NCBI GenBank assembly: GCA_977017575.1
Contig: CDRNVI010000026.1
Coordinates: 372,001 to 436,000, forward strand
Reading direction: 5' to 3'
Length of the DNA stretch: 64,000 bases
Origin: Paramoeba atlantica
Lineage: Eukaryota > Protista > Discosea
Part shown: one piece after another, positions 1,077-14,761 of the stretch
How positions within the stretch are numbered: the stretch's first letter is position 1
Layout of the letters: each line of letters begins with the position of its first letter
Made by a program: the position numbers and the translations under genes
The notes under the pieces: generated by a model
What the model saw: the letters and a program-made list of their open reading frames with translations, nothing else
The model's database searches: none
What the model was told of the DNA's origin: nothing

Positions 1077-3071
1077 ATGTATGTGCGAAAAAAGCACACG
1101 AAACAGAAACGGATGCTACTGCGATCCTTATACAACTTTTCTTCTCTCACACCTTTTTTACAAAGGCACCGCAAAGTAGTTGTACAACTTCCCGAAGACC
1201 TTCTGCCCTATGCCCTCCTAATTCAAGAACTAATTAAAGAAGAGTGGAACCATAGTCCTCAGAACGAAACTCTCTGTGCTAAAGCTGAGTCGTTAGGAGC
1301 ATGTGGCATGACATGTGCTTGCACTCCTAACATGGACGAACAGGGTGTCGCACTAAATACACTGGACGAACTAGCTTGTCCAAAGCCGAATGTTACCTGT
1401 ATCACCGAGAAGAAATCTTCCTGTGATCAAGGAAAATACGGAGCGCCGTCTATTGCGATTATGGCAGACACAACATTTACCTCATGTTGTCCCGATGAGG
1501 TATCCGCTGAACACCTTCCCGGGGTTGATGGAATTGTACACTTTGGAATGGATTGCGGGATTAAAACTTCCCGAATACCCATCCAGTATTGCAGACGAAG
1601 CTTCTCGTCTACGTTTCTTGCAAAATGGGAAAGCGTTTTAGAAAACGAGCTGAAGTCTGTATTTCATACTTTAGAGAGCTCTGAACAAACATCTGGGGAT
1701 TTCATTTCGAACGCAAAGGATGGCATAGCATCATTACGTATTTTGAGTATTGTTCTTGCTGCGGAGGCATATGAGCTCCTACCTATTATACGAACCGTAG
1801 CCAACCAACTTGCGGATGAGGCCAAACAACTCGGATGGGAATTCATTGTCGGTTCTACCACTACAAATGAAACGACCCCAGAGGGTTTCGATACAATACG
1901 CCTGGGCGCACTTCAGATCCCTCTGAAGGCCTCGGTCTATTTCCTTGTCGATCCTACGCTATCCGATGGTTCCCACGTGGGTGCTCTCCACGGGGCTTCC
2001 GAGCGTGCAACGATCTCCAATCCCGAATCCCACCCGCTCTTTTTTCTTACCGGATTGCTCGCCACACACTACGGCGTCCCTCTCCACATCTCCTCGGTTC
2101 GTTTTCCTTCACACGTAAAGGACGAAGCCCGATCGGAGTCGTTCGTCTCTTCCCCTACGGTGCCCAGCAATGACGGAGTAAAAAGTCTACTCCCTATTGA
2201 TGAATTACACAACACCACCGCGAAAATGAATCGTTCAAAACTATGGGCTTCACACGAAGAGCGTGTTGCTGTAAAATCAGCACGATCCAGCGATGCAGAA
2301 TTGGACCCCTGCCGACGTCGTGCGACCCAATCTGTCTATCTGCGTGCGAAACTGCGGTCCTCGCTTGCGGTAGGGATTGTGGTCCATACCCTCAGTGCGG
2401 TCGGGTCGAATCTTTTAATCCGCTACTTGTATGATGTGTTAAAACGAGCAGGCAAGCGCCCGTACGTGTTGTATACGGGACGTCTTAATGTGCCGAAACT
2501 GGCCAATTTTACCGCCGATTTAGATCTCTGTGTGCTGGTGGGGTGTGCGTACCACGGCGTAATGAGCTGTTCACAATCCAGGGAGTATCCGATACCTGTT
2601 CTCACCCCGATGGAGGTGTGGACGGGATTGTTTGTGGATAACTACCCGGAATTAAACGTTTGTATGGGAAGTGAGGTAGATCCTGCGTTCCTGTCCCGCA
2701 CAAACGATGTTTCGCCCCTTTTTGAATCCTCCCCTGTGCCCACACTTCCACTGATTCCCCATGCGCTGCGTTGGTTTCGACACGCCTATGAAAAGCTGGG
2801 CATGTCAAAGCCAGAGGAAGACACATCGAATGTGGTAACAGGAGGAAACTGTTCGTCACAAAATACCCTTTCGCGAGGGATTAAGTCTTCCGCACTAACA
2901 GTGGCCCCTGCACTCTCACTTTCGACAATAACACGTTGGCACTCGCGCAGCTACAAGGGGTTAGACCCACAAGTGGGGCAGACGCCTGTACAGACAGAGA
3001 TTTCAGAGGGCATGAGTGGGATACCCAGCGTTTACGACCATGAGAAGAGCGAGGAAACAGCATTGCAGTAA
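1077..3071 (+). CDS. DPH2: Diphthamide biosynthesis protein 2
   Basis: VVVQLPEDLL, IMADTTFTSCCPDEVSAEH, GIVVHTLS, GRLNVPKLANF, and the DPH2-type C-terminus RSYKGLDPQVGQT...EGMSGIPSVY. Confidence 0.85.
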   Translation: MYVRKKHTKQKRMLLRSLYNFSSLTPFLQRHRKVVVQLPEDLLPYALLIQELIKEEWNHSPQNETLCAKAESLGACGMTCACTPNMDEQGVALNTLDELACPKPNVTCITEKKSSCDQGKYGAPSIAIMADTTFTSCCPDEVSAEHLPGVDGIVHFGMDCGIKTSRIPIQYCRRSFSSTFLAKWESVLENELKSVFHTLESSEQTSGDFISNAKDGIASLRILSIVLAAEAYELLPIIRTVANQLADEAKQLGWEFIVGSTTTNETTPEGFDTIRLGALQIPLKASVYFLVDPTLSDGSHVGALHGASERATISNPESHPLFFLTGLLATHYGVPLHISSVRFPSHVKDEARSESFVSSPTVPSNDGVKSLLPIDELHNTTAKMNRSKLWASHEERVAVKSARSSDAELDPCRRRATQSVYLRAKLRSSLAVGIVVHTLSAVGSNLLIRYLYDVLKRAGKRPYVLYTGRLNVPKLANFTADLDLCVLVGCAYHGVMSCSQSREYPIPVLTPMEVWTGLFVDNYPELNVCMGSEVDPAFLSRTNDVSPLFESSPVPTLPLIPHALRWFRHAYEKLGMSKPEEDTSNVVTGGNCSSQNTLSRGIKSSALTVAPALSLSTITRWHSRSYKGLDPQVGQTPVQTEISEGMSGIPSVYDHEKSEETALQ

Positions 3072-3347
3072 GCTGAAAGAAGACGTACGTACTGTACGCA
3101 CTGTATGTAAGATGCCAAAAGATTATTGTTATAAGAAAATAACACGAAAGCCGAAATACTTATATTTGATATTTGGGCCGCAGTTTTGTACACTTTTGCG
3201 AAATTTATAGCGCCATCTTTAGTATTTCATCGCTCTCCTGCTTCATTTGCCTCTCTAAGCGTAGTCACCTTTCGTCCACTCTCGACCATTCACCTCTCCT
3301 TATCATTTCCAAATCTACCCTCAACGAACCCCACCAAAAAAAAGAAC

Positions 3348-6020: not shown

Positions 6021-6171
6021 TTAATCAAGAGCTGACGTGAATGAAAGTACTATGAAAGTAATATGTAGACGCGTCCTTGATCTCACAAAATTGTTTCAGA
6101 ATATTACATTGTAACTGCTTCAATTGTATCTAGCAGACTTTGACTGGTTTCGCTTCCTCTTTGTCCATTCG

Positions 6172-7014
6172 ATGCACTTAATCCCCACTCCAGATATTCC
6201 ACGTGTGGTACGCGCGGGTAAGGTACGTGGAAATCTTGCTCAGGAATATCAACTGGAACGATGTGTACATAATCTTACACAGCGGCACCAGTCCTGGACT
6301 TCAGAGACCCCTGCTTGTATGTGGTACGGTGTGAGTTGTCGCCACGGGGATGTTTATGTTATTGAATGGAATCATGAAAAACTACGAGGCATACTTGACT
6401 TCTCGGCCTTACCTGTCTCCGCTGTGGGTTTCCAGTGTAAAGAAAATCATCTTACGGGTCCCCTTTCCCTCGTTGAATTTCCTCCTTCTCTTTTAGAACT
6501 TAACGTTGCCGTTAATCAGCTCTCAGGTGGTTTAGACATGGGAGAACTTTGGTCAAAGATTACATTCTTTGAGGCGCAGGTAAATACAATGTCGGGACTG
6601 TTGGATTTTACACAAATACCTCCCGATTTGTGGGAAATGCGTCTTGCATGGAATGGATTCTATGGTAATTTAGATTTCACAACTTATCGGATACCGCGAA
6701 ATCTGAGAGTTTTGGATCTTTCACAGAATAAATTTCGTGGCACGCTTTGCTTGAAAGGCTTATGGGCGCCCGATCTTCAATTATCAGTGCAGGGCAATTC
6801 CTTGATTAAACATTTTGATGTCAGACAAGTGAATATCGCTCTGCTTACCGTAGACAGAAAAATGAAGTTGCTTGATGTCCCCCGCTTCTCACCAGTAGTT
6901 ATAAAGTACGTCCCCCGCAGTAAATCACGACCGACTTCAAGATCTATATCTACTGATCCTCATGGCCTGTCAAAACGAACGTGCATGTCAGTTGCATGTC
7001 TACTCTATGTATGA
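6172..7014 (+). CDS. Leucine-rich repeat protein (family A)
   Basis: RAGKVRGNLAQEYQL cap, W.SETPACMWYGVSC, LRR units LNVAVNQLSGGLD and LDLSQNKFRG. Paralogue of 8543-9280. Confidence 0.8.
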   Translation: MHLIPTPDIPRVVRAGKVRGNLAQEYQLERCVHNLTQRHQSWTSETPACMWYGVSCRHGDVYVIEWNHEKLRGILDFSALPVSAVGFQCKENHLTGPLSLVEFPPSLLELNVAVNQLSGGLDMGELWSKITFFEAQVNTMSGLLDFTQIPPDLWEMRLAWNGFYGNLDFTTYRIPRNLRVLDLSQNKFRGTLCLKGLWAPDLQLSVQGNSLIKHFDVRQVNIALLTVDRKMKLLDVPRFSPVVIKYVPRSKSRPTSRSISTDPHGLSKRTCMSVACLLYV

Positions 7015-7511
7015 GGTAACCCATCACAAACACCCATCACGAACCCCACACTCATGATCGGCCGTTTCAGGTCCACTGGGCGGTTGGTTCAGTGTGGTGT
7101 CTCCAACTTCGAAAATAGGTTCCCCAGTAACCAGCCGTCCTTCCCCGCACATGCTAAATTTTTACCCAAACACACAGCAGCAATGTAGAGTTCCATAAAG
7201 TTAGCTATTAGTATACAAGCGGTCCGAAGCATTTTTCATTTAATTAAGTATATTATAGTACAGTGTAAGCTTAGTATGTATTGAAATGAAGTAATTGTAT
7301 ACATTGCGTAGTTCGGTACATTGTATACCCCATCTAGGGGGATGTACCCCCTAGTTATGTTAGCAGTTAGATAATTGTTGTAAATGCATGTGCCTGATTG
7401 CAAATTTAATTCTAATTTCCTTGCATGTGATTACGTAAATGGATTCTTCAAAATCCATTTTAACTATTTGAGTTTTTAGGTGCACCCGTCGACCCTTATC
7501 CAATACAATAA

Positions 7512-8165
7512 ATGTGTTACATTTTCTTCAATACAGCAGACTCATCAGTTCGATCAGGAAAGGTGCGAAGAGCTCTTTTACCTCAGGAGTTCACTCTCGC
7601 GCAGCTCGTACAGGATATCACCACCTCCGAAGCGTCCTGGACTACTTCCACTCCTGCATGTGAATGGTCGTACGTGAAGTGTAATGCTGAAAAGGAAGTA
7701 ACTAGTTTGCCATGGTGCTTCAGTTTGTTTGCATCAGATTGTCCCACACTACAAGGAAAACTATCTTGGAAATACTTACCACGTACCTTGTTGTTTCTTG
7801 ATGCTTCTTCGCAGTCTTTGAGAGGGCCCGTGGATCTTTCTGTTCTACCTCCGGAACTACAAGATTTCCACATTAGTATGAATGAGTGTAGCGGATCACT
7901 GGATTTAACGCGCTTGCCCCCTACTCTTAAATCCCTATATCTCGATGATAATAGATTCAAAGGTGAAATTGATCTCACGTGTCTTCCGTTGTCGATACGC
8001 GAAATCTCCTTGTGCTACAATGAGCTATGCGGTGAGCCGGACGTCACGAAGCTTCCGGAACATGTATTCGAAGTTGACCTTTCTCACAACCACTTTACAT
8101 GGCATGGAGACGTACCATCAATAGTTATTATTTGGGATGAAGAGGAGACAAAAGCAATCGATTAG
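7512..8165 (+). CDS. Leucine-rich repeat protein (family B)
   Basis: SWTTSTPACEWSYVKC; LTRLPPTLKSLYLDDNRFKGEIDLTCLP. Confidence 0.8.
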   Translation: MCYIFFNTADSSVRSGKVRRALLPQEFTLAQLVQDITTSEASWTTSTPACEWSYVKCNAEKEVTSLPWCFSLFASDCPTLQGKLSWKYLPRTLLFLDASSQSLRGPVDLSVLPPELQDFHISMNECSGSLDLTRLPPTLKSLYLDDNRFKGEIDLTCLPLSIREISLCYNELCGEPDVTKLPEHVFEVDLSHNHFTWHGDVPSIVIIWDEEETKAID

Positions 8166-8542
8166 GTGACGGTAAAGCACTTGTAGATTTTTGAAGTTTT
8201 GCTATAAAAACGGCCTTTTCAGTTTTGCCGACACATTAGTATCAATGCAATGTCTACCATTCTGTACTATACATTATAAAAGGCTACATACGTTTCTCCC
8301 ATTCAGCCGGTCATTAATCTAATCAGATCAAATTGATTCAATCGTTCTGAAATGCATTTTTCTGTCCCGAGGACCAGTGGCGCACTTCCGCCGCGATTGA
8401 CACAAGCAGACAATACTTTGCAACAAAAATGACGAAAACTGATAAAAGAGGCGTTGAATTTCTCAGTATGGAAAACGTTTTTCAAACACAAGTACGAAAA
8501 AACCAATTTCCTTTTTTTTTTGTTTCTTTGCTTTGCTTGCAC

Positions 8543-9280
8543 ATGTATCTGACGTCTGCAGCTGATATTCCACGTGCAGTACGCGCGGGTAAGGTACGTG
8601 GAAATTTGGGTCAGGAATATCAACTTGAACGATTTGTACATAATCTGACACAGCGACATCCATCATGGACCTCAGAGACTCCCGCGTGTAAGTGGTACGG
8701 AGTCAGTTGTCGAGACCAAGAAGTATTTTCGATTGATTGGGAAAAAGAAAAATTACGTGGTAGTTTTGAGTTTTCGGGTTTGCCTCCGAGTACAGCACGA
8801 TTTTTGTGTTCTAAAAATCGTGTCTTTGGTTTTTTGCCACTTCTTGAATTTCCTTCCTCTCTCTTGCGAGTTGTCGTTGCGGCGAACCAGTTTTCGGGCC
8901 CCTTAAATTTGAATGACTTGTGGTCCACAGTTATTTATTTTGAGGCACACGTAAATGTGCTTTCTGGAGCTCTAGACTTTTCTACGCTCCCACTTGATTT
9001 GCGGGAATTGCGTTTAGCTAAGAATAACTTTGACGGCGAGCTCCACCTGGTGACAGGACGCGTGTTACAAAATTTGCAAGTTCTTGACCTCTCTTATAAC
9101 TCATTCAATGGTGCGCTTCGTTTAAATGGACTGTGGGCGCCTGCTTTGCAACTTTCACTACAAGGGAATCATTTTATTGCTGCACAGGAACTTCGTAATG
9201 TTTCACTTTCCCGTTTGAAGGTAAGTAATTCGCTAAGAAATCTCGTACGATACTCTTCCATGCCCGTAGAATACGAATAG
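8543..9280 (+). CDS. Leucine-rich repeat protein (family A paralogue)
   Basis: N-terminal DNA nearly identical to 6190-6350 (gatattccacgtg.gtacgcgcgggtaaggtacgtggaaat). LRR units. Frame is open from 8429. Confidence 0.8.
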   Translation: MYLTSAADIPRAVRAGKVRGNLGQEYQLERFVHNLTQRHPSWTSETPACKWYGVSCRDQEVFSIDWEKEKLRGSFEFSGLPPSTARFLCSKNRVFGFLPLLEFPSSLLRVVVAANQFSGPLNLNDLWSTVIYFEAHVNVLSGALDFSTLPLDLRELRLAKNNFDGELHLVTGRVLQNLQVLDLSYNSFNGALRLNGLWAPALQLSLQGNHFIAAQELRNVSLSRLKVSNSLRNLVRYSSMPVEYE

Positions 9281-9846
9281 GAGTTCGTATAGTTTGCGTG
9301 TACAGTATTAGTAAATTTGGTTAGACTGAAGCAATGTGAATACAATGTCTTGTAAAAATTATAATCGTCTTTATAATCGTTTTGTAATCTTTATAATCGT
9401 TCCTCTAGTTTTGCCTAGTTTTTGGACCCAGAGAGCACAAAGTTGTGTCTTTTTGTGTACCAACCTTTTTCTGTCCACCGTCTTCCATGATCAGTTTGAA
9501 TTGCATTTTTTCATTTCTCTTAATATTTTCACTGTTTTTGTTCACTTTTTTTGCAATAATCGAGGGTAGAGCAGTAGTTATACAACAACTGCAATGCATA
9601 AGGCATATTGATAATGCATAAGGATTGCCTTTTACACAGCCTCACGTAGACCATTCTGATCCTCGGGCTCAAAAAAATATCAGCCTTAAAAATACCTGAT
9701 TTCCTCTAGTTATAAAAACGAATGATTTTCTCCTATGGAAAACACTGCGATCAAAGTACTTTCTCACGAGAACGAGAACTCACGAATGTATCAAAATTAA
9801 GCAAAACCGAATAAAAGTTTAATCTTTAGAATTACATGACGCAGAC

Positions 9847-9963
9847 TGAGGGAGTTGCTATGCCCTGTCCATGGTATCGTGTTCAGGGGAACAGCAATCC
9901 CCCATTATCTCGGCGTAGTAAACACGCCTTGGCTTGCCTGGCACCACGATTGCCGAAAAAAAA
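9847..9963. repeat. Left terminus; inverted repeat of 11357-11473
   Basis: 117-bp inverted match with 4 mismatches by my count (tgagggagttgctatgccctgtcc... versus ...ggacagggcatagcaactccctca). Confidence 0.95.
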
Positions 9964-10313
9964 AATTCGGTTCATTTCGCAGCCCAGTTGCTTCCCACTT
10001 AAGGGGCCCGCTCCCACAACCGAGTGATCTCCCCGGCAGCACGGTTTTACCCATGCGTCGAGAAGGCTGGGGTGTGAGACCAGGGTGCATTAGTAGAAAA
10101 TTTTCGGAAGAAGAAATACGGAGATTTTACTGCATAATGGCGTAGAAAACTTTGAGTGCAATAGAACAAAGGGTTGGCGTAAACCTTTGGTTAACGTTTT
10201 TTCTTTTGGGGGGATTTACTTTCTTTGCCATTCCTCATGCTATCAACTCATAAATTTTACCAATTACTCTAGATTCGTATATTTGTTTCCTCCAGTTACG
10301 CTTTCCATAATTC

Positions 10314-11088
10314 TTACATAGGGTCTACATGTACATCGCCAGCTCTTAGAGCTGAGTTCAGGAGTGCTTCTTTTCTGTCATATTTATGCTCTTCTCGAGT
10401 CAACCCGTCCGCTGGGTTTTCTTTAGATTTAATATGGAAAATTCGAAAAGAATGTCCATGTTTCCCTATCTGTTCATCCATTTCCGTGATCTCATTACAC
10501 ATCGATCTCGTAACTGATGTACGCCCCGATTCTGATGGTATTTCACTCTGGTGAAACCAGTGTCACATATCAGCGGATAAAAAGTTTACGTTGGGGAAAT
10601 TCTCTATTACATGGATAATTTCAGCGATAGCTGGAAAATTCAAGCAAGGAGGGCGATTGCACATCTCATTTGGTGGTGTTCCATCCGCAATACTTCTTGA
10701 CAATTCCTCCGCTTTTGGTACCTCAAAGTAACGTAAATATAAACGTGATGATGATGATCGAGAGTCGTGTGCCACACGTAGCACCCCGCATTCCACGAGT
10801 TCTAATAAATGTTGTAACCAAACCCCGGAGGATAGTTTCCTTATTTTCCCGTGAAAAGGGGGACAATTTATCTATTCAATAAAATTTTGGGTACTTTTCA
10901 ATGCCGTGCAACATTTGATACCCCATGGTAAACCATGTTTTAGGTGTGTTGATGTAAAGAAACCAAGTTGTTCCTTCAGTATTTATGATGAATCTTCGTT
11001 AACAAAGAATTCGGGTATAAATGCATCAAGCAAAGCAACCGTTGCTTTTTTTTCTAGTTCTCTTTTTTTTACTCCACCGAATAAGCAC
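10314..11088 (-). pseudogene. Internally deleted reverse transcriptase/RNase H of TATE/DIRS type
   Basis: One frame with three internal stops: ...LRYFEVPKAEELSRSIADGTPPNEMCNRPPCLNFP...NFLSADM*HWFHQSEIP. This is the RT N-terminal motif (D.RHWFHQ; the TGA is probably from CGA). It is joined directly to ...IFHIKSKENPADGLTR, the RNase H C-terminal motif N.AD.LSR. The YxDD region is missing. Confidence 0.75.
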
Positions 11089-11356
11089 TAACGCGTTCAC
11101 TATCGTCGGTCTGAATTTCTGATTCAATATTCCTACCAGGCGAGATATCCTGAAAAGCCGTATTCCGAGCGTCAACCCGAGACGTCCGGTGTGTGCCTCG
11201 ATACTTCCATATGGGAGGATCTATAACGCACGAACAATACTCCCCCCCCCCCTTTGTTTTCTCTCCCCCGAACACTCCATATTTTTCAACTTCAAATCTT
11301 CTTAGGGGGGAGGACTCCCGTTAACATGCCTCAAGTGAGGATTAAGGAACTATTTC

Positions 11357-11516
11357 TTTTTTTTCGGCAATCGTAGTGCCAGGCAAGCCAAGGCGTGTTT
11401 ACTACGCCGAGATAATGGGGAGTTGCTGTTCCCCTGAACATGATACCATGGACAGGGCATAGCAACTCCCTCATTATCACTCCTTCGTAAGCACCATGTT
11501 ACCGGGACCAAGCCCT
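11357..11516. repeat. Internal complementary region (ICR) matching the circular junction of the element
   Basis: Its reverse complement reads ...cttacgaaggagtgataa-TG-agggagttgc..., which is the right end (...gaaggagtgataatg, 12576) fused to the left end (tgagggagttgc, 9847) through a shared TG. Confidence 0.85.
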
Positions 11517-11607
11517 AGGTGCCAGGCATGCCATAGCACGTCACAACTTCCCACCCTCTCCCTTCTGTTTTTATTCTGTTTTCACTTCATTAAAAAAACA
11601 TGCTGGA

Positions 11608-12336
11608 GAGGAGGATGTATAGCGCAAATGGAACGGCAAGTGTGCCCCGAAGGACACGGAGCCCATGGGCCTCCCAGCACGAATGCTGGGGCGGTGGTAC
11701 CCCGAAGGGTACGGAGCCCATGGGCCTCGTTACAGAGGATGTATAAATGCAACGGCAAGTGTGCCCCGAAGGACACGGAGCCCATGGGCCTCCCAGCACG
11801 AATGCTGGGGCGGCGGTACCCCGAAGGGTACGGAGCCCATGGGCCTCGTCACAGAGGATGTATAAATGCAACGGCAAGTGTGCCCCGAAGGACACGGAGC
11901 CCATGGGCCTCCCAGCACGAATGCTGGGGCGGTGGTACCCCGAAGGGTACGGAGCCCATGGGCCTCGTTACAGAGGATGTATAAATGCAACGGCAAGTGT
12001 GCCCCGAAGGACACGGAGCCCATGGGCCTCCCAGCACGAATGCTGGGGCGGTGGTACCCCGAAGGGTACGGAGCCCATGGGCCTCGTCACAGAGGATGTA
12101 TAAATGCAACGGCAAGTGTGCCCCGAAGGACACGGAGCCCATGGGCCTCCCAGCACGAATGCTGGGGCGGTGGTACCCCGAAGGGTACGGAGCCCATGGG
12201 CCTCGTTACAGAGGATGTATAAATGCAATGGCAAGTGTGCCCCGAAGGACACGGAGCCCATGGGCCTCCCTGCACGAATGCTGGGGCGGTGGTACCCCGA
12301 AGGGTACGGAGCCCATGGGCCTCGTTACAGAGGATG
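11608..12336 (-). repeat. Tandem array of about 6 x 119 bp, with three TTCG-loop hairpins per unit on the minus strand
   Basis: Unit starts (acagaggatg) at 11732, 11851, 11970, 12089, 12208 and 12327. Minus-strand stems: gtaccc-TTCG-gggtac, cccagca-TTCG-tgctggg, gtgtcc-TTCG-gggcac. Each unit also has two gcccatgggc palindromes. Confidence 0.95.
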
Positions 12337-12496
12337 AAGTACTGCCAGGCCGGGACCAAGCGAATTGATGTGTGACATTTTCAGGCGTGTAAGATTGTTT
12401 AGTTAAATGGAGCTAAATGTAGTAGTTATACTGGACACTAGAAACAAGTAATTCAATTATATTTAGTTTATAATCGTGCTATAGATGTATTGAAAT

Positions 12497-12565
12497 CTTC
12501 ACCCTCACACTCCGCCGAATATGGCGGTGCCGGGCTTGGGACCGGTAACAAGCGTGTTTACGAAG
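12497..12565 (-). ncRNA. Twister self-cleaving ribozyme (type P1 with a P5 stem)
   Basis: Minus strand: CUUCG UAA ACAC GC UUGUUA CCGG UCCCAAGC CCGG CA CCGCC AUAUUC GGCGG A GUGU GAG GG UGAAG. P1 CUUCG/UGAAG, L1 UAA and GAG-GG, P2 ACAC/GUGU, P4 CCGG/CCGG with loop UCCCAAGC, pseudoknots CC:GG and GC:GC, P5 CCGCC/GGCGG. Confidence 0.88.
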
Positions 12566-12706
12566 GAGTGATAATGTATATTTCATAAAAAGTGTATGAT
12601 TTTGTTTTTACCGATCAAAATTAGCGTTCTAAACGGAATTACATATGTAGATGGCAAGAAGTATGACATACCAGAAAGATAGCACGCGACACCTTTAGTT
12701 CTTTTC

Positions 12707-14761
12707 ATGTACCGCGCGTTTTCCATTACTCACAAGTCCTGGTCTTCCTCCTGCGGGACGACTTCCTCACATGCGTCCAGTCGATACCACCTCACGGGTA
12801 TGGCACAGCCCTTAGCCAAAATTCTACACGCCAAAGCTACCCTTCATCGTGAAAGGATTCAAAAACTACGAAAGGAGAAGGGCAATGAGAGTCTGGGACC
12901 CATCACAGTTGACTCGTTGTATAATGGCGCACGTGGGCTCACGTGTCTTCCCCATGAGCCTTCGACGTTGGACCCTCTGGAGGGCATTCGCTACCGTGGT
13001 ATGAGCCTTGCGGCGTGCCGAAACAAACTGCTAGATTGCTCCGAGATTGGCACCGAGCCGCGGCCGGAGGCGTTGTTCTGGCTCCTGCTCACAGGAGAAC
13101 TCCCCCATGCGGATGAGCTGCGTGAGCTCTCTGCGGATCTCCACAGGCGAAGCACCGAAAGTACCACACTACCCTCGGTGCTGTCCTTTCTCGAGACCCT
13201 CCCTCGCTCCATGCCCCCGATCACACAACTCACCATCGCACTGCTCGCGCTCCAACCCCACTCCTTACTCGCGCTCGCCCAAACGGAGGGCAAAGCCACC
13301 AAACGAAACACCCCCGATTTCATGCTCGAGGACGCCCTTAACTGTGTGGCCTGGGTCCCCGTCCTGGCCGCCGCGATCTACCGCAGGCACTGTGCTCCTG
13401 TGGATTCCAACGACACCCTCCCCCCTTCCGAACCAACCCACAACATCTCCTCAACAGAATCTCCCCTCTTCGAGACCACACCCTATTCTATTTCAAACCG
13501 TGAAACTCATGAGGGGGAAACCCATGAGGGTAACAACAATAACCATACGAACAACGCTCATCCTCTAAACCCCTTCCCCCCCTTATCCCACCCACGACCT
13601 CAAAATCCTCAAGACCACAACTCTCTTCACCTTCACGACAACACCTTGGAGAGCTCACAAAACACACGACCCACGAGTCGTGCTCCAAATTCAAAGTCGG
13701 CTCTCTCCTCCGATCCCTCTTTGGGGTCTTCTTGTGAGTCTTCTGGTGAGTCTTCTGGTGAGTCTTGTGAGTCTTCCGAGGCTCTGGGCTCGGACTGGAC
13801 CGCGGCCTTTGCCCGTGGACTCTCTCTCCACGGTTCTGGGGCCCACGACCTGCTCCGGCTCTTCCTCTTCGTCCACGCCTGCCACGACGGGGGGAGTCTC
13901 TCCACCCATGTGGCCTCGATGGTCGGGGGGGCGCGGGGGGATGTGTTTCTGTGTCTCTCCAGCGCCTGTGCCGCCCTGGGCGCCCCCGGGCACGGGGGGA
14001 ACATGGCGCAGGGGCTGGAGTTTTTACACGCCCTGCAGTGTACGTTGCGGAGGAAGAATAGAGGGGTTGGAGGGGGAGGTTTAGAGGTTGGGGGATTTGC
14101 CCCGCATTCGGCTACGAAGGGGGTAAATGCCTCCATCTCTTCTTCCTCCTCTTCTTCCCCTCTTTCTTTTTGTTCCTCTTCTTCCTCTTCTTCTTCTGTT
14201 TCCGGGGACGAGGGTCTCCGTTCGATTCTCTCCGAACTCACGTGGGAGTATTACCACAACGGAGCGGACCACATCCCCGGCTACGGTCATGCGGTGCTTC
14301 GAGGCCCCGATCCGCGATACGATCTGCTCTATCGCTTCGCCTCGCAGCACTGTGGGGGTAACCCCTACTTTCGCATTCTCCAGCAGATCCACCCGATCAT
14401 GCCGGAGGTGTTAGCGCGGCATGGGCGCGGGGGTAATCCGCATGCAACATCGGATGCCATCTCGGGGCTGTTGTTGGCCCATTACGGGATGAGGGGAAGG
14501 CAGTCGTTGTCTTCTTCATCTTTTTCTTCATCTTCTTCTTTTATTCACTTCTTTCCCGTGCTGTTGGCCGTAAGCCGACAGCTCGGGATTGTGAGTGGGT
14601 TGGTTTGGGACCGCATGGGTCGACGCCCGGTGGAACGGCCGCGGTCGGTGTCGGTGGGGGAGCTGGGGCGGCGGTTTCAAATCACAGAGAGGGGGGAGGG
14701 GAAAATGGGGCAGAGGGGGAAAATGGGGGAGAAAGGGGAGAGGAGGGAGAAAGAGGGGTAG
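12707..14761 (+). CDS. CS: Divergent citrate synthase with long low-complexity insertions
   Basis: YNGARGL...EPSTLDPLEGIRYRG, PEALFWLLLTGELP, HDGGSLSTH, GHGG, IPGYGHAVLR.PDPRY, VWDRMGRRPVERPRS. Confidence 0.85.
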   Translation: MYRAFSITHKSWSSSCGTTSSHASSRYHLTGMAQPLAKILHAKATLHRERIQKLRKEKGNESLGPITVDSLYNGARGLTCLPHEPSTLDPLEGIRYRGMSLAACRNKLLDCSEIGTEPRPEALFWLLLTGELPHADELRELSADLHRRSTESTTLPSVLSFLETLPRSMPPITQLTIALLALQPHSLLALAQTEGKATKRNTPDFMLEDALNCVAWVPVLAAAIYRRHCAPVDSNDTLPPSEPTHNISSTESPLFETTPYSISNRETHEGETHEGNNNNHTNNAHPLNPFPPLSHPRPQNPQDHNSLHLHDNTLESSQNTRPTSRAPNSKSALSSDPSLGSSCESSGESSGESCESSEALGSDWTAAFARGLSLHGSGAHDLLRLFLFVHACHDGGSLSTHVASMVGGARGDVFLCLSSACAALGAPGHGGNMAQGLEFLHALQCTLRRKNRGVGGGGLEVGGFAPHSATKGVNASISSSSSSSPLSFCSSSSSSSSVSGDEGLRSILSELTWEYYHNGADHIPGYGHAVLRGPDPRYDLLYRFASQHCGGNPYFRILQQIHPIMPEVLARHGRGGNPHATSDAISGLLLAHYGMRGRQSLSSSSFSSSSSFIHFFPVLLAVSRQLGIVSGLVWDRMGRRPVERPRSVSVGELGRRFQITERGEGKMGQRGKMGEKGERREKEG

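Follow-up and report, generated by a model that had tools for sequence, protein, structure and literature searches.

Does the 69-nt motif on the minus strand at positions 12497-12565 of a 64,000-nt stretch of DNA from Paramoeba atlantica (contig CDRNVI010000026.1, positions 372,001 to 436,000) belong to the self-cleaving twister ribozymes, and what would the mobile element that carries it gain from such a ribozyme? An earlier sequence-only reading of this stretch, called the window throughout, had described the motif as a complete twister lying 17 nt from the end of an element. We followed up this reading with covariance models, related loci, public contigs and the literature. The answer we propose is that a canonical twister is used by a DIRS-like retroelement which keeps a built-in spare of the piece that would be cut off; the twister assignment is supported by sequence comparison. 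The spare lies within the element's internal complementary region (ICR), and the explanation that we find best overall, namely a genuine twister in a DIRS-like element with cutting followed by restoration from the ICR, is in our judgement moderately probable.

Architecture of the motif

Read from 12565 to 12497 on the minus strand, the window gives exactly the letters quoted in the sequence-only reading. All the parts that it had named (P1, P2, P4, both pseudoknots, the UAA loop, GAGGG and P5) could be located by sequence, fold and Rfam alignment. In the list below the support for each part is given in brackets (MFE, minimum free energy).

12497-12565, minus strand: candidate type-P1 twister, P3 absent and P5 present (sequence, MFE fold, Rfam twister-P1 alignment, our own covariance model and relatives)
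12565-12561 with 12501-12497, minus strand: P1, CUUCG with UGAAG (sequence, MFE fold)
12560-12558, minus strand: cleavage loop UAA (sequence, Rfam alignment)
12559-12560, minus strand: predicted scissile dinucleotide U12560/A12559 (alignment to the Rfam UAA)
12557-12554 with 12510-12507, minus strand: P2, ACAC with GUGU (sequence, MFE fold)
12552-12553, minus strand: conserved GC of L2, putative T2 partner of the GC at 12535-12534 (Rfam alignment, with the rule given in PMC5408937)
12530-12545, minus strand: P4 and L4, CCGG UCCCAAGC CCGG (16/16 match to the Rfam consensus)
12512-12527, minus strand: P5 hairpin, optional in the class, CCGCC AUAUUC GGCGG (MFE fold, relatives)
12511, minus strand: single conserved A, 3' of P5 (sequence, Rfam alignment)
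12502-12506, minus strand: GAGGG of L1 (Rfam alignment, relatives)

A 6-nt linker separates the GC of L2 (12553-12552) from P4, and L4 is the site of the partners for both pseudoknots. In T1, the CCC of L4 at 12540-12538 is complementary to the GGG of L1 at 12504-12502, and in T2 the GC of L2 is complementary to the GC of L4. The CCC/GGG and GC/GC pairings define twisters (PMC5408937); here the strands of both putative pseudoknots are complementary. The nested MFE fold of the 69-mer consists of exactly P1, P2, P4 and P5 in the order of type-P1 twisters. The cut between U12560 and A12559, which had been predicted from the letters, follows from the Rfam alignment together with the rule that the twister scissile bond is 5' of the conserved adenine adjoining P1 (PMC5408937).

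Membership of the twister class

An Rfam search of the whole window at the gathering threshold gave zero matches, and a whole-window scan by E-value gave no twister match. With a 500-nt query only a partial Twister-P5 match on the P4/L4 half was obtained (17.9 bits), a better member of the same clan having been filtered out. Confining the search to 12490-12572 brought out RF03160 (twister type-P1, clan CL00120), whose model positions 1-68 align over 12498-12564 with 28.2 bits and a local-search E-value of 8.9e-5. All the upper-case letters of the RF03160 consensus are matched (UAA, CGC, CCGGUCCCAAGCCCGG, A and GAGGG). The core had also been equated with that of the rice twister Osa-1-4. What stands of this is an exact match to the Rfam consensus, the sole comparison available, the Osa-1-4 sequence itself not being found in the paper texts.

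The exact 16-nt core is expected 1.8e-5 times on both strands of the window, where it occurs once even with two mismatches allowed. When the core was held fixed and its flanks were shuffled, none of 2,000,000 shuffles brought together UAA, GC, A and GAGGG with a P1 and a P2 of 4 bp. A chance origin of the motif is thus excluded. P3 is present in 78% of annotated twisters (PMC5408937), and the P3 and P5 stems are both optional in the class (PMC5408937, PMC11662667). In a large experimental survey P5-bearing type-P1 twisters were uncommon and all of them had a cleaved fraction above 0.8, while about 94% of the predicted type-P1 twisters tested were active (PMC11662667). From its sequence the motif is very probably a genuine type-P1 twister, P3-less and P5-bearing, and it is likely to cleave in vitro. 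Self-cleavage, and the RNA end that it would create in vivo, are what membership of the class predicts.

Relatives, covariation and constraint

Exact-protein look-ups allowed us to fetch six related loci, all from the European Nucleotide Archive (ENA) assembly ERZ24900291, and a scan of JGI metagenomes with a pattern of the family led to one contig, L004. Neither viral contigs nor bacterial and archaeal genomes contained a match to the family pattern. We built a covariance model from the window copy and its closest relative and used a model-based alignment, because MAFFT misaligned the 3' halves owing to the different lengths of P5. The copies scored as follows.

Window: 103 bits (query copy)
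L001: 103 bits (subfamily of the window copy, decayed)
L007: 88 bits (subfamily of the window copy, decayed)
L004: 58 bits (metagenome contig)
L002: 51 bits (second subfamily)
L005: 33 bits (second subfamily; a 12-nt insertion destroys GAGGG)

In L004, P1 reads UCACC/GGUGA and P5 has 9 bp; in L002, P5 is an 8-bp stem (UUCUCGUG/CACGGGAA) and P1 is weaker and offset. Each of the two folds unaided into the twister secondary structure. P5 has been swapped in them for unrelated hairpins of 8 and 9 bp at an unchanged position. With both pseudoknots included, 95.5% of the cells of the five-sequence alignment pair, and in 8 out of 23 pairs both partners have changed; four of these pairs belong to P1 and four to P5. 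P2 and P4 are invariant, T2 shows one C-to-U wobble as its sole change, and T1 departs solely in L005, which is broken by the insertion. The observed pairing values were reached in 0 of 500 shuffles, and controls with slid partners were 30-49% paired. We take this covariation as supporting evidence for the proposed structure, not as proof of it.

The comparison of the two subfamilies, which come from the same genome assembly, is in our view stronger evidence than the covariation. Over the first 240 nt only the terminal CATTATC and the twister core can be aligned, and along the full element conservation between the subfamilies is confined to three blocks, namely the twister-bearing 5' end, the ICR and the 3' terminus. 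In this comparison the putative ribozyme behaves as a conserved cis-acting module. The motif stands upstream of the remnant of an RNase H reading frame, and on the same strand, in the window copy and in L001, L002, L005 and L007.

Termini and recent mobility of the element

Public contigs were compared with the window over 9600-12800. A 5,879-nt contig from run X2 matches the window from 12800 to 12575 and goes straight on at 9846; it skips 2,728 nt, and the joint is ambiguous by 2 nt (TG). This contig is an empty site, therefore the sampled isolates are polymorphic for the insertion and the family has been active recently. The joint of the empty site shows no target-site duplication of the endonuclease type, only a 2-nt overlap common to element and target. 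The two letters CA at either end of the element also belong to the target. Other contigs depart right after 12576 or 12577 into unrelated sequence, and five copies (window, L001, L002, L005 and L007) all start with CATTATC after unrelated flanks. The empty site and the five-copy comparison together place the terminus at 12576 and the predicted cut 17 nt inside it. The distance of 17 nt given in the sequence-only reading therefore holds for the cleavage site.

In two public runs words from the twister bin reach a summed depth of about 20 times the unique-flank value, which indicates a multi-copy family and is not a copy number. Copies in the public contigs vary by indels in the P5 loop at 12516-12518, and several contigs match only from 12529 upward, so that the 5' half of the ribozyme motif is common to them and P5 is different. 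The features of the element that the argument needs are these.

9847-12576, minus strand: whole defective, non-autonomous DIRS-like retroelement of 2.73 kb (inverted repeats, empty site, subfamily comparison)
12560-12576, minus strand: 5' leader of 17 nt, predicted to be lost on cleavage, containing the 5' strand of P1 (empty-site joint, five copies)
11472-11494, minus strand: ICR arm facing the 5' terminus of the element (inverted repeat I2, 22/23 complementary to 12554-12576)
11344-11473, minus strand: ICR arm facing the 3' terminal 130 nt of the element (inverted repeat I1, 92% complementary to 9847-9976)
9847-9976, minus strand: 3' terminal region (inverted repeats I1 and I3; limit set by the empty-site joint)
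9903-9927: inverted relic of the 5' leader with the start of the twister, inside the 3' terminal region (inverted repeat I3)
10317-10562, minus strand: remnant of the C-terminal part of an RNase H domain (45% identical to P0002)
11626-12336, minus strand: tandem array of six 119-bp units, with the twister on one side and the ICR on the other (Tandem Repeats Finder: 6.0 copies, 98% matches)

The ICR block as a whole (11344-11494) is made of the complements of both extremities side by side, that is, the complement of a circle junction. It is from this architecture that we call the element DIRS-like. On the minus strand the reading frames downstream of the ICR are broken and the window copy has no intact open reading frame (ORF). 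P0002, a 189-residue protein of another copy, has the motif layout of an RNase H, D..E..D..N-x-x-AD, in the form of FSDAS, AE, CDN and ENPADGLT. A Pfam search with seven ORF pieces of the window element, the RNase H remnant included, returned nothing credible. When the remnant was used in protein searches, the relatives obtained numbered only 4-6 and came from a single ENA assembly.

The ICR mirror ends near the predicted cut

In DIRS-1 the ICR is essential for retrotransposition and complementary to both extremities (PMC7192593). The ICR arm of the window element was reverse-complemented and set in register against the element's 5' end. In the window copy nucleotides 1-19, which are the 17 nt before the cut plus AA, are identical to the ICR; nucleotide 20 is a mismatch and the register is lost soon after. 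L005, of the second subfamily, likewise has 19 nt identical to its ICR with a mismatch at nucleotide 20, and the ICR of L006 contains the same 19 nt. The two subfamilies differ at 4 positions of nucleotides 10-16, yet the leaders of the window copy and of L005 each equal their own ICR. Leader and ICR differ by two mismatches in L002 and by three in the old copy L007. In two subfamilies the boundary of ICR identity thus lies at most 2 nt from the predicted cut.

Such a step is the pattern expected if the RNA template starts at the cut and the leader is recopied from the ICR in each cycle, and we infer from these sequences that it may have arisen in this way. A leader copied from the ICR would always equal the ICR, and the part downstream of the cut would evolve separately. 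The 5' strand of P1 lies in the leader and would be inherited via the ICR, so that it must co-evolve with the 3' strand; the P1 strands are indeed matched in both subfamilies (CUUCG/UGAAG and GCUC/GAGU). Alternatively, the boundary may reflect an ordinary DIRS repair device that ends near the ribozyme by chance.

The cycle that we propose would run as follows. A transcript that enters the element in sense would fold into the double-pseudoknot twister and cut itself between U12560 and A12559. The released element RNA would start with a 5'-OH at AAACACGC and would keep the body of the ribozyme as a 5' structure. The 17 nt lost, including the 5' strand of P1, would be kept in the ICR (11472-11494) as their exact complement. 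After reverse transcription, the ICR would serve as template or splint, as in the DIRS-1 model, and would restore the leader and the circle junction during completion of the cDNA. The junction would carry a single CA (...CTCCCT-CA-TTATCAC...), and recombination at this CA/TG dinucleotide would insert the circle and give the 2-nt ambiguity at the empty site. With ends templated by the ICR, every new copy would regain a complete ribozyme whatever its flank. The folding, cutting and 5'-OH release steps are proposed from class membership, and ICR completion and CA/TG insertion by analogy with DIRS-1. We lean slightly towards this full mechanism. As to its central claim, that the twister sets the 5' end of the genomic RNA, that the ICR rebuilds the cut 17 nt with its P1 strand and that the ribozyme is thereby regenerated at every retrotransposition, we hold the case to be evenly balanced.

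Two further mirrors were seen in the element. Past the leader, the ICR arm runs on at 11495-11525 and mirrors the twister's 5' half in degenerate form, with CCGGGACCAAGCCCUAGG replacing the core. At 9903-9950 the 3' terminal region has the relic inverted leader followed by UAAACACGC, with the L4 portion deleted. These mirrors suggest that the ends were once true inverted repeats containing the putative ribozyme.

Weighing the evidence

Several observations weigh against the explanation that we favour. The 28.2 bits obtained with RF03160 compare with an Rfam gathering score of 67.2, a threshold that the motif does not reach, and the relative in L004 is likewise under the gathering score with 24.9 bits against Rfam twister-P1. 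The covariance-model check suggested with the sequence-only reading has therefore come out mixed: there is no match at the gathering score, and there is a full-length alignment with a local E-value of 8.9e-5. The shortfall arises because the motif lacks the 6-bp P3 stem of the model and because its P5 counts as a 14-nt insertion. The nested fold of the 69-mer does not significantly surpass shuffled sequences in stability (z -1.06). When 11 nt of leader (12566-12576) are included, the predicted nested fold pairs the leader to the GAGGG/P1' region (12499-12506) at -25.9 vs -22.9 kcal/mol and would compete with pseudoknot T1. This pairing could be a folding switch, or delay or modulate folding, or it could be an artefact of pseudoknot-free prediction. 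The covariation comes from five sequences, among them two pairs of close kin, in an alignment fitted to the model.

Other points of this kind concern the element. In related copies the reverse transcriptase (RT) signal is sub-threshold (RVT_1 in L003, 23.2 bits vs a cut-off of 29.6, E 6e-5), and so is the tyrosine-recombinase signal (Phage_int_SAM_4, an N-terminal SAM-like domain, in L005, E 0.0026); sequence searches of the PDB for a recombinase gave no match. The window copy is antisense to the plus-strand host ORFs, so that read-through from the host would not make the sense RNA. Finally, the older copies L001, L005 and L007 are altered at conserved positions and inserted copies are thus not maintained: in L001 the GC of L2 has become GU and a U of L4 has become C, and L007 has one G of T2 changed and one mismatch in P2. 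Decay of older copies is expected, because copies are no longer selected once inserted. It is the window copy that is pristine, as fits its polymorphic and hence young state.

Among the other explanations, a chance resemblance without any ribozyme has as its sole support the failure at the Rfam gathering score; the rarity of the core and of its flanking features, together with an architecture common to independent relatives, already refutes it, and its probability is practically nil. It is very unlikely that the motif is an inactive or hitch-hiking relic with no part in the cycle of the element, the ICR being an ordinary DIRS end-repair device unrelated to the cut. The sub-threshold Rfam score and the decay of older copies would fit such a relic, and DIRS-1 loses far longer terminal stretches without any ribozyme (PMC7192593). 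A relic would not, however, be expected to keep an invariant core with covarying P1 and P5 across the subfamilies and the metagenome relative while the neighbouring sequence cannot be aligned, nor would it account for ICR identity ending so close to the predicted cut in two subfamilies.

If the twister is real and active, its main work could still lie elsewhere than in the trimming that the ICR would repair. It might mainly cut longer-than-unit transcripts, made from tandem copies or circular DNA, to unit RNAs that are perhaps ligated into circles as in retrozymes, 5' trimming and ICR repair being secondary. Twisters leave 5'-OH and 2',3'-cyclic phosphate ends (PMC11662667), the kind joined in retrozyme circles (PMC6765202), and circular DNA intermediates are part of DIRS models (PMC7192593). 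We nevertheless consider this unlikely: the element carries a single twister, with no second one in the window, the empty site shows the insertion of a single unit, and the exact 19-nt mirror in the ICR would have no explanation if the leader were never lost. The twister might also serve mainly after cleavage, as a compact 5' structure that protects the uncapped 5'-OH RNA from 5' exonucleases or promotes translation or packaging, release being incidental. Nearly the whole ribozyme (element nucleotides 18-80) would stay on the 3' product, and both hepatitis delta virus (HDV)-like ribozymes and T-variant twisters at the 5' ends of retrotransposons promote translation of the downstream ORF (PMC8501958, PMC6765202). 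The window copy moved recently without an intact ORF, though, and a role in translation is therefore not decisive for non-autonomous copies. As the main function we find such a 5' structure quite unlikely; it is compatible with cutting followed by ICR restoration and may add to it.

Comparison with known systems

Like the type-P1 twisters of RF03160, for example the rice Osa-1-4 class, the window motif has the order P1, UAA, P2, GC, P4/L4, A, P2', GAGGG, P1', the identical CCGGUCCCAAGCCCGG core, complementarity for both pseudoknots and a predicted cut 5' of the conserved A. Unlike most of them it is without P3 and with P5, an uncommon combination in the survey (PMC11662667), and its host is a protist, whereas protists are absent from the organism groups listed for twisters. 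According to the sequence-only reading twisters are not known to be reported from kinetoplastids, and the literature that we searched contains no paper linking the two in substance.

Twister-class ribozymes in sense at the 5' end of a retroelement are known from the T-variant twisters of Perere-3, an RTE-type element without long terminal repeats (non-LTR) of Schistosoma mansoni, and from the truncated twisters of RTE elements, where they are thought to free the element RNA from co-transcripts (PMC8501958, PMC7761336). Those are truncated variants in target-primed elements; their cut adjoins the target-site duplication and the flank gives the 5' strand of P1. The window element differs in having a full canonical twister in a DIRS-like setting, with the predicted cut 17 nt inside and the piece to be lost, P1 strand included, stored in the ICR. 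The HDV-like ribozymes of R2 and of L1Tc from Trypanosoma cruzi also head retrotransposon RNA and process it from an upstream transcript, and L1Tc is a ribozyme-headed retrotransposon of a kinetoplastid (PMC6765202). They belong to another ribozyme class and to non-LTR elements, and they cut at their own 5' edge, so that nothing is lost and no repair template is needed. The predicted cut 17 nt inside, the ICR and the inverted ends do not fit a ribozyme-headed target-primed element of the kind of R2, L1Tc or Perere-3.

With DIRS-1 of Dictyostelium and other tyrosine-recombinase retrotransposons that have inverted terminal repeats and an ICR, the window element shares an ICR in which the complements of both extremities stand next to each other. 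DIRS-1 has an incomplete genomic RNA, and without its ICR the cycle is not completed (PMC7192593). A short sequence is present at both junctions in either case, a trinucleotide in DIRS-1 (PMC7192593) and 2 nt here. In DIRS-1 transcription begins within the left repeat and fixes the 5' end of the RNA, which lacks about 300 nt, and the element is not known to have a ribozyme, whereas in the window element the predicted ribozyme would set the end 17 nt in. Retrozymes and Penelope-like elements also have small self-cleaving ribozymes in the repeats of often non-autonomous retroelements (PMC6765202). Theirs are hammerheads, with two ribozymes per unit and a circular RNA biology; the window element has one twister, and as this is the single one in the element and in the window, identity with a retrozyme is ruled out. 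In the literature searched no paper joins twisters with DIRS or tyrosine-recombinase retroelements, and a survey of the kinetoplastid recombinase retroelements VIPER and TATE does not mention ribozymes.

Other features of the element and its surroundings

The summed word depth of the 119-bp array is hundreds of times that of unique flank in the public runs, and its units are rich in short GC hairpins; an exact look-up of an ORF of the array found no record. The one public run guessed to be of RNA gave a single poor contig, which falls on the array. In L004 (L004:140-340 and L004:864-1238) tandem repeats of about 119-120 nt adjoin the ribozyme motif, and a copy of the array in inverted orientation stands before an RT/RNase H-like ORF (1364-3328). 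The arrays of L004 and of the window are unrelated in sequence, and a layout of a twister followed by an array of units of about 120 nt may be a conserved design.

The motif had been said to be antisense to the local gene cluster, and this is so: ORFs with leucine-rich repeats (LRR) and a citrate-synthase ORF lie on the plus strand. Relative to its own element, though, the motif runs in sense. Three tandem plus-strand ORFs with weak LRRNT_2 and LRR matches lie immediately upstream of the element, at 6124-9280. On its other side the element lies 131 nt upstream of the start codon of a plus-strand ORF of 684 aa (12707-14761), in the opposite orientation. This ORF has three stretches matched to citrate synthase, the best of them at residues 511-646, and its N-terminal part is largely rich in short TCT-type repeats. 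A protein-atlas search with the citrate synthase gave generic bacterial clusters only.

In the flank of L002, upstream of the element's 5' terminus by about 12 nt, is a perfect 18-bp hairpin (L002:4419-4472, C7TTTATACTTCC ... GGAAGTATAAAG7). The 5' flanks of some copies, for example GAACAGTTTAAAGTAACTAA (L007) and ACAGTACTA (L002), loosely resemble the tail of a kinetoplastid spliced leader. We compared the five 5' flanks for a shared target of the spliced-leader type; they show no clear likeness to one another.

Significance

That a ribozyme can stand at the 5' end of a retrotransposon is already established (R2, L1Tc and RTE-type elements such as Perere-3). Few twisters, however, have a known job, and their only documented link with retroelements is that of the truncated variants in RTE-type non-LTR elements. 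As to how elements of the DIRS type define and restore the ends of their RNA, only the need for the ICR has been shown experimentally. A complete twister motif whose predicted cut falls at most 2 nt from the end of the ICR mirror ties these two questions together and makes both of them testable. The P3-less, P5-bearing subclass scores far under the Rfam threshold, and standard annotation will consequently miss such ribozymes. If the proposed role is true, the element would carry a self-renewing ribozyme module, which would give a full-length twister a defined biological role and would be the first ribozyme known in the DIRS order.

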